The position numbers were made by a program, and so were the translations under genes. Under the pieces are notes generated by a model, which worked only from the letters and a program-made list of their open reading frames with translations, ran no database searches and was not told the origin of the DNA. A stretch of DNA of 62,971 nt, filler included, from Intoshia linei (lineage: Eukaryota > Animalia > Orthonectida): NCBI GenBank assembly GCA_001642005.1. It is 8 parts of 8 records of this genome, joined end to end, with 100 filler letters (N's around TTAATTAATTAA, not from the genome) between each part and the next. Parts side by side here need not be neighbours in the genome. Positions count along the whole stretch, not along the records: positions 41,000 to 46,825 come from LWCA01001741.1; 7 more parts are not named here. One strand, 5' to 3'. Positions 40,231 through 47,005 of the stretch are shown piece by piece (positions within the stretch are counted from its first letter, which is position 1; each line of letters starts with the position of its first letter).

Positions 40231-41123
40231 TTATTTTAATACAAGGTTTTATAAACTGATTTCCACATCTTATTTGACAACTTTAAATAATGACAAGATA
40301 ATTTTTTTCAAAAATTTTTCGAATGGTAACGTCAAATTTTAGTACCCTATACCAGGCATTATCAACCGGGTTCATGTGGACCCAAGGGGTCCACAGCACT
40401 TTTTTGGGGGTCCATAAAAATTATATACAGTTATTACATATTATAGATATTTTCAGTAACATAAAGTCGTTTTTTATTAACTAACGTCATATTTTCAAAA
40501 CGTAAAGACATTTTTTCATAGTTCGAAAAGTTCACAAATCGTAAAATCGTTTTTTTAAAACAAAAGTCCATTTTATTTTCTTGGTTGTTGATAAATATTG
40601 ATAATAACGCAATTAACATTAGAGGTTTCTCGAAAAAATGAAAGTTAAAATGTATTATTCATAAATATAAATTGAACTCTCAGGAAATGATTCTCTTGCT
40701 TTTTTACAGAATTGACAACGCATTGTAGTTTTTGAATCTTTTATATGATCAATTGTATCATATCTTATTAATAAGGTAAAAATTTCCAATAGGTTGGCGT
40801 ATTCTTCCCTCCAGATTGATTTGTTTTTAGTTAATCCAAGGATAAATTTATTTTATGATAATGATGTTTCATCAACATCGTTATAATTCCACGTAGCTAN
40901 NNNNNNNNNNNNNNNNNNNNNNNNNNNNNNNNNNNNNNNNNNNTTAATTAATTAANNNNNNNNNNNNNNNNNNNNNNNNNNNNNNNNNNNNNNNNNNNNT
41001 TATTCACAATCATTTAATAATCAAATTAATTTTGTATTTTCAACTTTTTTAAGTTAATCAAATTATATTTTAATTGTATTTTAATATATAAATTATTATA
41101 AAGTTTTTAACCTTTTCTAAGGA

Positions 41124-41900
41124 TGTCTAAAAGAAGGCAATGAAATAACAATTACGTAGAATTTGGTTTTAGCTGTCATAATGATGCAGATGAAACCAAA
41201 AAACCTCACTGACAGTGTTGAAGTTATCGCTCGAAAAAGAAGACGTTTCGATATAGGTGGAACAATTGACAATTTATCATTTCTTCTTAATGTAACAAAA
41301 TTTTAGAGGCATAATATCATGTTGCTTACATGTTTTCTAAACAAAAAAGCATCATACCATCGGAAACGTTGATCAAACCCTGTACTCTAAACATTGCAGA
41401 ACTTCTATTTGGCGAAAAACAAAAAAGGGCACTTACATCAATTCCTTTGTAAAAGGATTAAAAATTTAGCAGAAGTTATCAAACTTCAAGTTATTGATGA
41501 ACTTCGAAAAAGCCTAGTAAAATTTAGTTTACAATTGGACGAATCTAACTGATGTGTTTGTAAGATATGTTGTGAATGATAACATTAAGAAGGAATATCT
41601 GTTTTGTGAATCATTAAATAAAACTACAAGAGAATTGATGTATTCGAAATAAATTATAAATTAAAATATATATAAAATTTTTTATGGGCCCTATAATTTA
41701 CTTTGGCCCCCAAATAAAAAATTTTTACATAATTCCTTGATTTTTCTAGTGGCCCTTTGGGAAATATAGTATATATGACTATGATAGCTTTAAATGTGAT
41801 ATTTGGTGGATTTTGGTGTAGTATGCTTAATATCTATCCATTTGTGACTAATATTGCCCTTGAAGTAATTATTACTTTTGTTACAACATATTTTTGTGAA
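41124..41900 (+). mobile_element. Buster-type hAT transposase relic
   Basis: Fragments YVEFGF, LIKPC, FSLQLDES, FVRY..EYLFCESL and FWCSMLNIYP..FVTTYFCE, with stops and frameshifts. Confidence 0.8.
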
Positions 41901-44034
41901 ATTGAATTTTTTATTCTAACAAATTAAAAAAAAGAAAAAAAATAAATTAGATGTCCGTGCCGGCATGCAAGTAAACCTATAAAAAACAATGCGAAGATTT
42001 AGCTTACTTCTTCAAACTGCTATTTCAAAGCAACAATAATGATCCCATTAAAATTTATGTAAATAAATTTGTTCAATTGTTATGTAAACGTAATCCGCTA
42101 CTACTTAATTCGTCTATTTTCTGAGTCTTTAACATTATATTTGAATAATCTATTTTTGATTAATTAATTTGGTGGTATAACCAGGGCTACTACATTTTCC
42201 AATCTTTTTCAATTAAAAATAGATAATACATCTACTAAATATTGCAGTAGTATTACAAAGCTTTTAGTGGATATGATAGTTGACACGTTTTCATTTTTAT
42301 AAAGGTTTAAAGTAAGTACATACAGGGTCGTGGAGAGGGTCATATGTCCCGTGTCTACAATCATAAGGGCCTACTGTTATAATTTATTAATAGGTATTGA
42401 TGAAAAATTTTATAAGTATATCATAATTTCAATAATCAATGCTATTTCTAATGGTTATTTTTAATTTCTAGATAATGAACGTTCGATTAATTAATGTATA
42501 GAGGTCCATTTTTAAAAAAATTTTTATAGGGGCCTATACCTTCCATCGAGCCCGGGCCTACTTCTGGCTCTCCACAACCATTATTATGACCAAATCAACT
42601 TTAATTCTTAAATTTTATTCGTTTAATATAAGTAACTAGTTAACACTTCATTTATAATTAATATTGTATTAATTGTAGTTTAATCAGGGGTGCACAGTCA
42701 TTAAGATCAATATTTAAGGTTGCATATGTCAAAAAAAGTTAAGAATCACTGGAATAGATGAAAGAATAAATACATACGCATATTAATATACTATACTAGC
42801 TTGTCTGTTATTTACTTCGTACAAAAAATAGCTAGATCTACTAAGGGACATTTTCCAGTCATGTTTTTAAAGAGTATTAAATTTTTTAATAAATAAACTG
42901 TATAACTAAACATGAAGAACAATATTATAAAGTCGGTACCACGTTTATAAGCTCAAACGCCAATTTCCTTTAAAATAAAGTTCAGTTTTAATTTTTCCAT
43001 AATATTTTTAAAATGATATTTATTAAGACAAACGTAACTCGAATAGATAGCGTTTTTTATTGAATGTTTTTGATTTCGAATTAGTTTTTCTATTTTAAAA
43101 ATACACACTTTTAGGGCTAATTGCCCATCGAATTCTAAAATTTTCAAAAAAATGTGACAACCTACTGTTCATAGTGAATTAAACCATATTACTTGTTGAT
43201 AAATCAGTAATACAGTGTAATTACCATAGAAGTTTGACAAATTAATATAAATTGTACATTTTACAATGTAAATATAAAAATTTAATAAAATTTGAACTTG
43301 ATGTAAAATAAAAGATGTGAAACCTGATTTGAGTTCGTCTGATTTTTTTTTCATTTTGAACTGGTTTTTATAGATATTAACTTGGTTTAATTTCTTTCAA
43401 TAGTAAATAAAAACAAAATTTGTATAGTTACAAAATTGAATCAGAGATTTTAGATATTTTAATACAGGATACTCGTATAAGCTACAATTCAAAAGTATTG
43501 TTGAATTGGCATTTTTATCCAAATAAATGTAAAATATGAATTAATTAGCGCAATGTTCGTAGTCTGGTTAAGTGTAGTAACTGTTACTATATAAAAAGTA
43601 TATTAATTTTTAGAGTTTGTATAACGTTGGATTAATAGTTAATTTAATCACTTGGTTAATCAAAATTAAAATTTAATGATGTTAACATTTCCATAATAAA
43701 ATGTTATTTATTGTAAACATACTCCTATCGATTGCAAACATACCTTATTGCTGAAAACAGTCTTAACGATTGAAAAGTTTGAGAACGTCTATATTGTGAT
43801 TATTTAAACAATACTAAATTTGATCCAAAATATTTAGAGTAATTTTTGTGGCACAGGAAATTTTATTTTTCTCGTAGCATATTTTTTCAAATAAGTTGAT
43901 ATATATTAAATTTTCAAGGTAGAGATTAACCACAGTTTTACTAATAAGTATTAAATATGCTCATGAAAATTGAAAATAAAAAAATGATATAAATGATTTT
44001 ATTTTCATTCTTATCAACTATTTAAACAATTATG

Positions 44035-45229
44035 TCAATAGTCGAGAATAAGTTTGTTAAAATTATCGTGTTTGACAACGAATGAGTGAGTATTTTCATT
44101 ATAAAACCAAATGTTTTCGAATTTAGTATTCAGTTTAACATCTTTACCATCATATTTATTGACAAATCTGAAAGCTCTACCCGTACTTTGAATAATGGCG
44201 TCAACAACCACAATTAATTTAAAAGCATTGTTTTTTTGTGTCTTTTTTATTGAATCTTTTTCAAAATCCTTATCTATAACAATAATTTTGGAGCATTCGG
44301 ATCGTCTGGGCATACTTTGAATTAAATTGTACACACTTCCAGCAAAATATACACTACGACAACGTGTCTTAGAATCGTATAAATTTTTTTTTTTTCTTCG
44401 TATATCATCAATTTTTACATCTATTTGTGAAACAAATGAATTGTTACCAACGGTGGGATCATCATAGCTTTGACTGCAATTTAGATTTGTACATTTAATC
44501 AAGTCGTGCAATGGACTCATTGGAGTTATAGGGTGATAGCAAACTTGAGGCCACAGCAAATTAATACTACCTTCATCATCACTTCCGTTTGTATATACTG
44601 AAATTCGTATCATTTGTTGTGATTTACCCTTGGTCATGTAAAACAATGAAAATTTTGCACTAATTAAATTATTTTTTTCTAAATCTGCAACTCTAAATTG
44701 TAGTCTAGCGCATTCGTAATAATTTTTGGTTTGATTCAAAACTGTTTCACTAGACAATTCACTTGATACGGTGCAATTTTTGCTAAATTGTATGGATCGA
44801 TTACTCGCGTACATTATTCTTATCAATACCAACCCTACGCAAATCCCACTGATAAGAATGTGTAGATAAGATTGAATGATTATCAATACGGTGCAACTCG
44901 AACAAGTCTAAATTTACATTTAATTTAAATTAATTTTATTAGGTTTTTAGTACATTTTCACACGTTCTGGCTCCAGTACCAATTGTTTGTTGAGTTTCAA
45001 TAGAAAATAATAAACATGACATGTAGTTATTAATGTTTATTAGACATTGGTTTGTTCCGTTTTGATTTAAGTGGATTTTCATATAAATGTACCATATTGA
45101 TGAGAATAGTATCCAAGTTAAAGGAAATATTCCCATTACAATCAGTAAGGTGAAACCAAATGAACAGTTTAGAACCTTACATATACACCAATTGCGCGCT
45201 TTAGTAATTATGAAATTAATTTTAGCCAT
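44035..45229 (-). CDS. KCNJ: Divergent inward-rectifier potassium channel (Kir) with a TIGTG filter; 2 clear exons (intron ~44953-44909), N-terminus uncertain
   Basis: M1 (FPLTWILFSSIWY), QCLININNYMSCLLFSIETQQTIGTGAR, M2 (IIQSYLHILISGICVG), IQFSKN, LQFRVADL, LLWPQVCYHPITPMSPLHDL, FKLIVVVDAIIQSTG and FENIW..NFNKL all map in order onto Kir motifs. Confidence 0.88.
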
Positions 45230-45726
45230 AATGTGTAACTAATAAACTTGTATGTAGATTCTACACACAAACTTTAGTTAAACAAAATTTGACTTATTTA
45301 CTTTTTCAATATTTTTATCCATTTTTTGCTACACAAATGCAGTATAGATTATAATACATTATCTGAATTAGTGTGTGTACTTTGAAAAGTTTTGTTGTAA
45401 TTAAAAAGAGTATATTACTGAGGCTCCGAAATGTAATTTAGAAAATTATCATCCAAAAAAAATTTCAAATGCTGCAATTTTCTAAGCCTCAAAATTTAAT
45501 TTACTTTTTTTATGAACTAAAAAAAAAATTAACTTTATTATAGTTATTTATAGTTTATTTTGGTTGTAAATTACAACTGGTAATATTGAATGCAATTATA
45601 AATGGTAATGTATTGGAAGTGTTTAAATTAACAGAATTACTATTTTTGTCATTAATTGAAATTTTTATGCTTATAAAAAGTGACATGTTAATTTATCATT
45701 GTTGTAAAACACGATTGGTACTAAAT

Positions 45727-46090
45727 CAGCGCTTTTCAAACGATGTCCCCTAGCAAATCTTAAAGATAAAATTTTTATATATTGTATTTATTAATATTTT
45801 TTTTAAATTGTTAAATTAAGTTGTAACAATGAATCATTTAAGGAGGACTTTACATGTGTATTTTTGTTAAATTATTCAAATATTGAAAATTTGATGGTAT
45901 GCCAATTTAATCTAGATTTAATTAAAAAGTAAGATGTTAATTTATTTTCTATATAATCATTTTATTTTGAGATTATTATTAGAAAAAATTTCGTTTCAAC
46001 GAATCAATAGTATATTTTTAGATTGGTGTGTCGCAAAAAATTTTCAGATTGAAATGTGTGCCGCCAACCAATATGGGTTGGAAAGCACTG
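45727..46090. mobile_element. hAT-type MITE upstream of the Kir gene
   Basis: TIRs cagcgcttttcaaac / gttggaaagcactg; TSD degenerate. Confidence 0.5.
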
Positions 46091-47005
46091 CCCTAATCAT
46101 TAAGTTCTAATGCAGTTTTTCAGTCTATACACACCAACTATGACGATTGGTATGATATCTAACATCACTATTTGTCACATATAGTTTTTTTAATATAATA
46201 TATTTTTTGACAGTCTGAATCGAAGAATGGTATATGAAATCATGTATTATTAACAGGACCGTGGAGAGGGGGGCTAGGGGCCATATGGACCGGGCCTACA
46301 ATCATAGGGGGGCCTAATTTATAAATTTAATAATAGGTAATGTTGGAAAATTATCGTATAATGTTCCATTAACATTAAAATTAGTGCTGTGTAAATAGCT
46401 TATATAATTATAATTATAGTGTGTGTGTTCAGCTTTATTTAAATAACTACACGTCTTAAAATTTTATCAAGTCCACATTTCAATTACAGTTTTTTCCGGG
46501 GTGTTTGCAAACTTAATTTGAACCTCCCAAACTCACATCTTACGGGTCAAAAACCCAAATTGTCCTTTTTTTAAAAATTAAACAAGTTGGAAAATTTAAA
46601 AAATTATCATAATATTAAATTTAAAACAATTATATCCTTAGGCTAAAATCCCAAATTCCTCTTCCTTTAATAATGAAAAAATCCCTAGAATTTCAAAACA
46701 TTTACATATTGTACAGTAGTATCCTGTTAAATTCTCCAACTCGTTTTCTTTTCAAAAAGAGGGACAACAGAAGTTTTTGACCCTTAAGATGTGAAATTGG
46801 GAGGTTGAAATTTATCTTATTATACNNNNNNNNNNNNNNNNNNNNNNNNNNNNNNNNNNNNNNNNNNNNTTAATTAATTAANNNNNNNNNNNNNNNNNNN
46901 NNNNNNNNNNNNNNNNNNNNNNNNNAAAAAAATAAATCATACAGGACAATATATATTTATTTAATTGATAGTATCCAATTTTAATTTTCGATGTTATTCG
47001 CACAT

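Follow-up and report, generated by a model that had tools for sequence, protein, structure and literature searches.

A Kir-derived gene of the orthonectid Intoshia linei with threonine at the aromatic position of the selectivity filter

The orthonectid Intoshia linei is a parasite of highly reduced organisation, whose proteins are very divergent and whose introns are short (PMC6543705). Our analysis covered one piece of its assembly GCA_001642005.1, the entire 5826-nt contig LWCA01001741.1, which occupies positions 41000-46825 of the window, the whole 62,971-nt stretch of DNA to which all coordinates refer. The sole gene called on this contig, A3Q56_07706 (P0001), encodes a "hypothetical protein" of 382 aa, its gene model being already public as an unnamed protein. 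The exon-2 ORF of the Kir-like gene matches that protein at 100% identity, and joining the two exons by their coordinates (Table 1) gives a translation identical to the public sequence. Exon 1 begins with an ATG at 45229, and an in-frame TAG lies four codons upstream, at 45241-45239. The intron is close in length to the I. linei median of 57 bp (PMC6543705). Exon 2 had been described as 283 codons in the original prediction, a figure that needs correction: the 283-codon ORF starts at an internal TTG, and the exon (44907-44035) actually comprises 290 codons and a stop. The GC content is 0.31 in the coding sequence and ~0.26 in the flanks, and no tRNA or Rfam match was found on the contig.

Table 1. 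Features of A3Q56_07706 in window coordinates, in the order of the protein
Feature	Position	Strand	Remarks
Exon 1	44954..45229	-	92 codons: short N-terminus, slide-helix-like helix, M1, turret, pore helix, filter
S23-F24-G25, replacing the RWR/KWP lipid-contact motif	45155..45163	-	Alignment with Kir6.2 K67-W68-P69
M1 helix, residues 24-52	45074..45160	-	AF2 helix; W39, F42, W46 retained
Pore helix, residues 69-81, including E78	44987..45025	-	AF2 helix, pLDDT ~95
Selectivity filter T82-I83-G84-T85-G86	44972..44986	-	Codons ACA ATT GGT ACT GGA
Thr85 codon ACT	44977-44975	-	Aligned column in 79 relatives: Y 68, F 11
Intron	44908..44953	-	46 nt, GT..AG; stops inside; length not divisible by 3
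Exon 2	44035..44907	-	290 codons + TGA: M2, cytoplasmic beta-rich domain including insert
M2 helix, residues 95-125	44809..44901	-	Alignment and AF2
His108, upper M2 glycine site	44862-44860	-	79 relatives: G 74, S 4, E 1
Ser112, rectification site (Kir6.2 N160 / Kir2.1 D172)	44850-44848	-	Alignment
Y125-A126-S127-N128-R129, replacing the basic PIP2 tether cluster	44797..44811	-	Relatives R/K-P-K-K-R
Insert of ~83 aa (about residues 232-318) in the loop that leads to the G-loop strand	44230..44490	-	Lineage-specific

A3Q56_07706 is a Kir homolog by descent and fold, with M1, pore helix, filter, M2, and cytoplasmic beta domain. For the family searches the two exons were queried separately, and for full-length searches the public protein was used. 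Exon 1 matched the Pfam family IRK (PF01007) with 56.6 bits (cut-off 22.7; E 3.4e-15), and exon 2 matched IRK_C (PF17655) with 41.9 bits (cut-off 22.5; E 1.1e-10), the latter match being split in two by the insert. Sequence searches of the PDB aligned residues 20-230 to Kir6.2 and GIRK2 at E ~6e-18 and exon 2 to Kir6.2, GIRK2, and Kir7.1, with E values of the pore-domain matches to GIRK2 and Kir6.2 from about 1e-10 to 6e-18. An AlphaFold2 model built from our 80-sequence alignment has a mean pLDDT of 77.5, with most of the TM and beta domains above 90. When this model was submitted to Foldseek, the best 50 matches were all Kir channels (E down to 1.8e-20), and the matches to Kir7.1, Kir6.2, Kir2.2, and GIRK2 had target-normalised TM-scores of up to 0.82.

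Within this family the protein stands very far from its relatives. We searched 1.84 billion representative proteins exhaustively with HMMER and obtained 724 matches, of which the best 150 were listed. The only one of the 724 below E 1e-30 was A3Q56_07706 itself; the best other match, at E 3.3e-27, is 33% identical over an alignment that covers the pore only. Where only part of a relative aligns, identity is 25-39%, and overall it is about 22-29%. No ortholog emerged from the exhaustive search, and word-index protein searches with exon 2 and with the full-length protein returned A3Q56_07706 only. The nearest relatives with named sources are protostome Kirs of a pseudoscorpion, locusts, mosquitoes, shrimps, rotifers, and an oyster. 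None of the 30 representatives whose sources were named was a second I. linei Kir; these had been picked from the best 150 of the 724 matches for their rank, for a strongly AT-biased composition, or for closeness in the tree.

The family alignment, consisting of A3Q56_07706 and 79 relatives, shows how unevenly the divergence is placed. At positions conserved in at least 80% of the family, A3Q56_07706 keeps 34 of 66 residues, and the lowest of the 79 relatives keeps 49. Of the positions that are invariant in the 79 relatives, it retains 10 of 11, the sole loss being the Trp at the start of M1. In the maximum-likelihood tree, its terminal branch is the longest, at 2.77 changes per site, about 6 times the median of 0.48. 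No supported clade of this tree contains A3Q56_07706. The prediction that the protein is lineage-specific is upheld by this branch, by the ceiling of 39% identity, and by the lack of another G-T-G filter among the best 150 of the 724 matches.

Few features of K+ channels are as conserved as the aromatic residue of the G-Y/F-G triplet. The K+ signature T-x-G-Y/F-G is absent from A3Q56_07706, whose filter is T-I-G-T-G. Threonine at the aromatic site is unique among the 150 listed proteins (the best 150 of the 724 matches), the other 149 having Tyr or Phe, and by this the filter change exceeds what is expected by chance; the codon ACT is at least 2 substitutions away from every Tyr or Phe codon. 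Around it the pore scaffold is well kept: both filter glycines are retained, and the pore helix and the filter positions other than Thr85 are canonical. Conserved pore positions (residues 62-104) are retained at 14 of 16, compared with 20 of 50 elsewhere (Fisher p = 0.0012). The original reading of the pore agrees with ours throughout: it had placed a T-I-G-T-G filter, as the codons at 44986-44972 (minus) confirm, in a pore colinear with that of Kir channels, as the Pfam IRK match and the GIRK2 and Kir6.2 alignments also find, with the Glu-Arg pair and both flanking cysteines retained (E78, R88, C62, and C94 are all present). Searching the literature, we found no natural G-T-G K+ filter, no published description of the A3Q56_07706 filter or of orthonectid Kir channels, and no specific Pfam counts for them.

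Other unusual filters occur among the relatives. In the dipteran protein P0030 (Lutzomyia longipalpis "Kir3") and in P0067, the filter is G-I-G-F-G instead of T-I-G-F-G; clusters of 3 and 10 members share this change, which is thus probably genuine rather than an error in the gene models. The model of P0002 (Cordylochernes scorpioides, 666 aa) has two Kir pores in tandem, the second with the filter T-I-G-Y-S, and the partial P0035 (Diploptera punctata) has T-I-G-Y-W. The odd filters of P0002 and P0035 may be gene-model artefacts, and odd Kir filters in databases need read-level checks.

Further changes lie outside the filter. The upper glycine hinge of M2 is His108, at a site where 74 of the 79 relatives have Gly, and the lower glycine, Gly117, is retained; at the bundle crossing, the position of the Phe gate is Leu (L120). 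The contacts for PIP2, namely the RWR motif and the basic K..KPKKR cluster, are mostly lost. The motif at the start of M1 has Trp in 79 of 79 relatives and Arg in 64 of 79, and A3Q56_07706 lacks that Trp. The original prediction had anticipated the histidine, which we confirm, and the replacement of the basic cluster after M2 by YASNR, which is correct with the qualification that two basic residues, R122 and R129, remain. It had also placed a serine at the D172 rectification site. This placement stands, but it is not evidence of remodelling, Ser being ordinary among invertebrate Kirs at this site (Q 44, N 11, E 10, D 7, T 3, S 3 in the relatives).

A3Q56_07706 lacks the N-terminal cytoplasmic segment, which in the family includes beta strand A and a full slide helix: ahead of the M1 Trp it has 38 residues, compared with a median of 109. 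A search for a missed N-terminal exon, in which an HMM of the family N-terminus was run against every stop-to-stop frame of the contig, gave a best hit of E 0.17 in the wrong place, and none was found in the ORF lists or in the 1.6 kb upstream. A further N-terminal exon may lie past the end of the contig. In the cytoplasmic domain, the invariant His and Ser-Pro are retained, and the loop from S223-P224 to F321 is 96 aa long, compared with a family median of 13. The insertion of about 90 aa in the original prediction is here measured at about 83 aa; it is predicted to be disordered (AF2 pLDDT below 50 over residues 237-304), and no usable match to it was found in Pfam or the ESM Atlas. That it is an unrecognised intron was ruled out, as the Kir segments on either side share a frame; this idea is also opposed by its 88 stop-free codons, which at flank composition have a probability of ~3e-4. 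Within the insert, a run of 12 A at 44384-44395 (minus) codes for Arg-Arg-Lys-Lys-Lys. The assembled frame is unbroken there; homopolymers of this kind are liable to slippage and to errors in their length. Among the relatives, P0099 (JGI/IMG, 390 aa) alone also has a sizeable insertion in this loop (48 aa, compared with the median of 13), and the loop may be a permissive site.

We next considered whether such a changed protein is the product of a gene under maintenance. At the composition of the flanks, the chance stop rate is 0.088 per codon, i.e., one per ~11 codons, and the probability that the 290 codons of exon 2 would be open by chance is 3e-12. When neutral substitution of the CDS was simulated at flank composition, a stop appeared after a median of 10 substitutions, corresponding to about 2% amino-acid change, with the 99th percentile at 12%. 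No relative is less than 70% different from A3Q56_07706, and since neutral change breaks the frame at ~2-12%, nearly all of this divergence arose while the frame was kept. At the level of sequence, then, A3Q56_07706 is a real, intact, selectively maintained gene of animal Kir descent that has evolved very fast, and the original view that it is not in simple decay is supported by the open frame, by the retention of invariant and pore positions, and by the speed with which neutral change breaks the frame. The retention of slow sites is to some degree expected on any branch, through rate heterogeneity, and a gene that had lost constraint only recently would be expected to look identical.

A comparison with known channels helps to define what this protein may be. 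It shares with the canonical animal Kirs (vertebrate Kir2.x, Kir3.x, Kir6.x, and Kir7.1, and arthropod Kir1-3) the 2-TM pore with a cytoplasmic beta domain, the pore-helix Glu, the post-filter Arg, the turret Cys pair, the filter glycines, and the lower M2 Gly. It differs from them in its filter Thr, its S-F-G, its two-Arg PIP2 cluster, His108, the lack of a recognisable N-terminal segment, the 83-aa insert, and the ~6-fold longer branch. We describe it as Kir-derived and not as a canonical inward-rectifier K+ channel, because three functional hallmarks of the family, the K+ signature, the PIP2 site, and the N-terminal domain, are lost or depleted in it. The dipteran P0030 and P0067 are likewise natural animal Kirs with a non-canonical filter, but in these the first filter position is changed and the aromatic is retained, and their length and conservation are ordinary. 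Kir5.1 and the "KvS" subunits (Kv5/6/8/9) are silent alone and offer a model for a partner-dependent role; unlike A3Q56_07706, they keep a canonical filter. The weaver mutation of GIRK2, G156S, also within the filter triplet of a Kir, loses selectivity. The human Kir2.1 mutation Y145C (Andersen-Tawil syndrome) lies at the exact position of Thr85, inside the G-Y-G triplet, and the mutant channel traffics normally, does not conduct, and is dominant negative (PMC5634867). Both of these are deleterious single mutations in otherwise canonical channels, whereas A3Q56_07706 carries a fixed substitution of at least 2 steps in a protein that has co-evolved around the filter change. Kir2.1 Y145F works, and Kir6.2 F133Y is non-functional unless the residue after the pore-helix Glu is co-changed (PMC2233698); the filter aromatic is thus coupled to its surroundings. 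Finally, the NirBac channels of prokaryotes are Kir-like, but the sequence of their pore loop is unrelated and their function is non-selective (PMC4607889). They have the Kir/KirBac architecture without the canonical K+ signature, and are in this respect a precedent for a Kir scaffold that is not K+-selective, but they are bacterial and their entire pore loop is replaced, whereas A3Q56_07706 differs at one filter residue and is of animal Kir descent. It is not of the NirBac type: its pore loop is canonical but for one residue, and it is a eukaryotic gene with a spliceosomal intron.

We propose a tentative mechanism for this protein. Since the pore scaffold is the best-conserved part of an otherwise changed protein, four subunits of A3Q56_07706 most likely still assemble to enclose an ion pathway. 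In the filter, the small side chain of Thr would replace the aromatic brace behind the filter, and the pathway is expected to be less rigid, which would in turn weaken K+ selectivity, lower the conductance, or both. Only weak rectification is expected with Ser112 in M2, and the channel should gate independently of the canonical PIP2 site. The product of a maintained Kir-derived gene, with a tetrameric ion pathway of weaker K+ selectivity and/or low conductance that opens independently of the canonical PIP2 site, is the reading we would put forward, although we hold it at somewhat less than an even chance. The more specific version, a Kir-fold channel with a G-T-G filter that conducts with altered selectivity (Na+-permeable or non-selective) and opens without the canonical PIP2 site or the N-terminus, seems to us possible but rather doubtful. 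Taken as a whole, the original interpretation is partly supported: it holds in that the gene is lineage-specific and not in simple decay, it does not hold in counting Ser112 as a remodelled gating residue, and the two functions that it offered, a non-selective cation channel or a non-conducting regulatory subunit, are putative.

The known mutants also provide arguments against an altered-filter channel. Tyr-to-Cys in Kir2.1 leaves trafficking normal and removes conduction, with a dominant-negative effect (PMC5634867), and Phe-to-Tyr in Kir6.2 abolishes function unless the pore-helix residue is co-changed (PMC2233698). Because these mutants lose function, a small polar filter residue could simply close the pathway; in addition, a canonical Kir could be left unable to gate by any one of three losses seen here, that of the N-terminal strand, of the PIP2 contacts, or of the glycine hinge. 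The protein could instead be a non-conducting Kir-derived subunit that folds and tetramerises with its filter closed or collapsed, and that acts as a regulator or dominant-negative partner of another Kir or has some role other than conduction. The behavior of Y145C would fit this well, and so would the large loss of the PIP2 contacts that canonical Kirs need in order to open, the His in place of the upper glycine hinge, and the missing N-terminus. On the other hand, to be regulatory the subunit would require that I. linei also encode a canonical Kir as its partner, and none appeared among the 30 named representatives (from the best 150 of the 724 matches), which is a weak argument; moreover, the filter Gly, Thr, and Ile and the Glu/Arg pair are retained beyond the apparent needs of assembly. 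We regard a non-conducting subunit as conceivable, though on balance improbable. It is also conceivable, in the opposite direction, that the protein conducts and is still K+-selective despite the Thr, since the filter works through backbone carbonyls, whose geometry could be kept by compensating changes nearby. The canonical state of the other filter positions and of the pore helix is consistent with this, as is the account of Proks et al. (PMC2233698, citing So et al. 2001), by which the working signature mutants of Kir2.1 alter gating and not selectivity, and Y145F is functional. Nevertheless, no Tyr/Phe-to-Thr case exists among the 149 other listed relatives (from the best 150 of the 724 matches), the literature search returned no natural GTG K+ filter, and small residues at the filter aromatic site abolish the Kir2.1 current (PMC5634867). 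Retained K+ selectivity seems unlikely.

Two further explanations were considered. The gene may have been recently inactivated, or may be dispensable and drifting toward loss in a gene-shedding genome, in which case the odd residues would be early decay. Orthonectid gene sets are indeed strongly reduced (PMC6543705), A3Q56_07706 is a lone gene on a short contig, several changes that would each be disabling co-occur in it, and its count of 34 kept positions among 66 compares with at least 49 in each relative. Set against these are the 382 codons that remain open at a chance stop rate of 0.088 per codon (exon 2 alone, 3e-12), the intact splice sites, the in-frame A12 run, the narrow limit of about 2-12% amino-acid change that could accumulate neutrally without a stop, and the 10 of 11 invariant positions that are kept. 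Recent decay is in our judgment an improbable account. Alternatively, the gene could really have a Tyr codon here that sequencing or assembly turned into one for Thr: moving one T turns GGTACTGGA into GGTTACGGA, as the original prediction pointed out, and a single draft assembly is the only source. Such a conversion, however, takes either a pair of compensating indels separated by 2 nt or no fewer than 2 substitutions within the codon, the neighbouring frame is perfect, and the remaining protein is equally aberrant, so that the filter change fits the general pattern. As ACT is at least 2 substitutions away from any Tyr or Phe codon, or two compensating indels from TAC, the origin of Thr85 by a sequencing slip or by a single recent mutation is unlikely, and we consider an artefact of sequencing or assembly very improbable indeed.

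Returning to the channel with a less rigid filter, it is unusual for a G-T-G filter to occur naturally within a pore under constraint, and expression would offer a direct test. Such a gene would mean one of two things: that the pore of a Kir can accommodate a non-aromatic brace when its surroundings have co-evolved, or that one of the most reduced animals known has turned a Kir fold to some non-canonical end. If the reading of altered selectivity is true, A3Q56_07706 would stand to eukaryotes as the NirBac channels do to bacteria, and would be nature's own test of how much of the K+ signature and of the Kir gating machinery a channel can do without. Extreme divergence is the rule among orthonectid proteins, and this case is known from one draft contig.

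Of additional note are two pairs of repeats on the contig. Direct copies at 42337-42409 and 46278-46352, ~80% identical over 76 nt and 3.9 kb apart, bracket the Kir-like gene; they have a GC-rich core that is unusual for this AT-rich contig, and may belong to a dispersed I. linei repeat family. Near the contig end, 46515-46599 and 46727-46812 form an inverted repeat with arms of ~86 nt that are 81% complementary and ~130 nt apart, and this element (46515-46812) looks like a MITE or foldback element.
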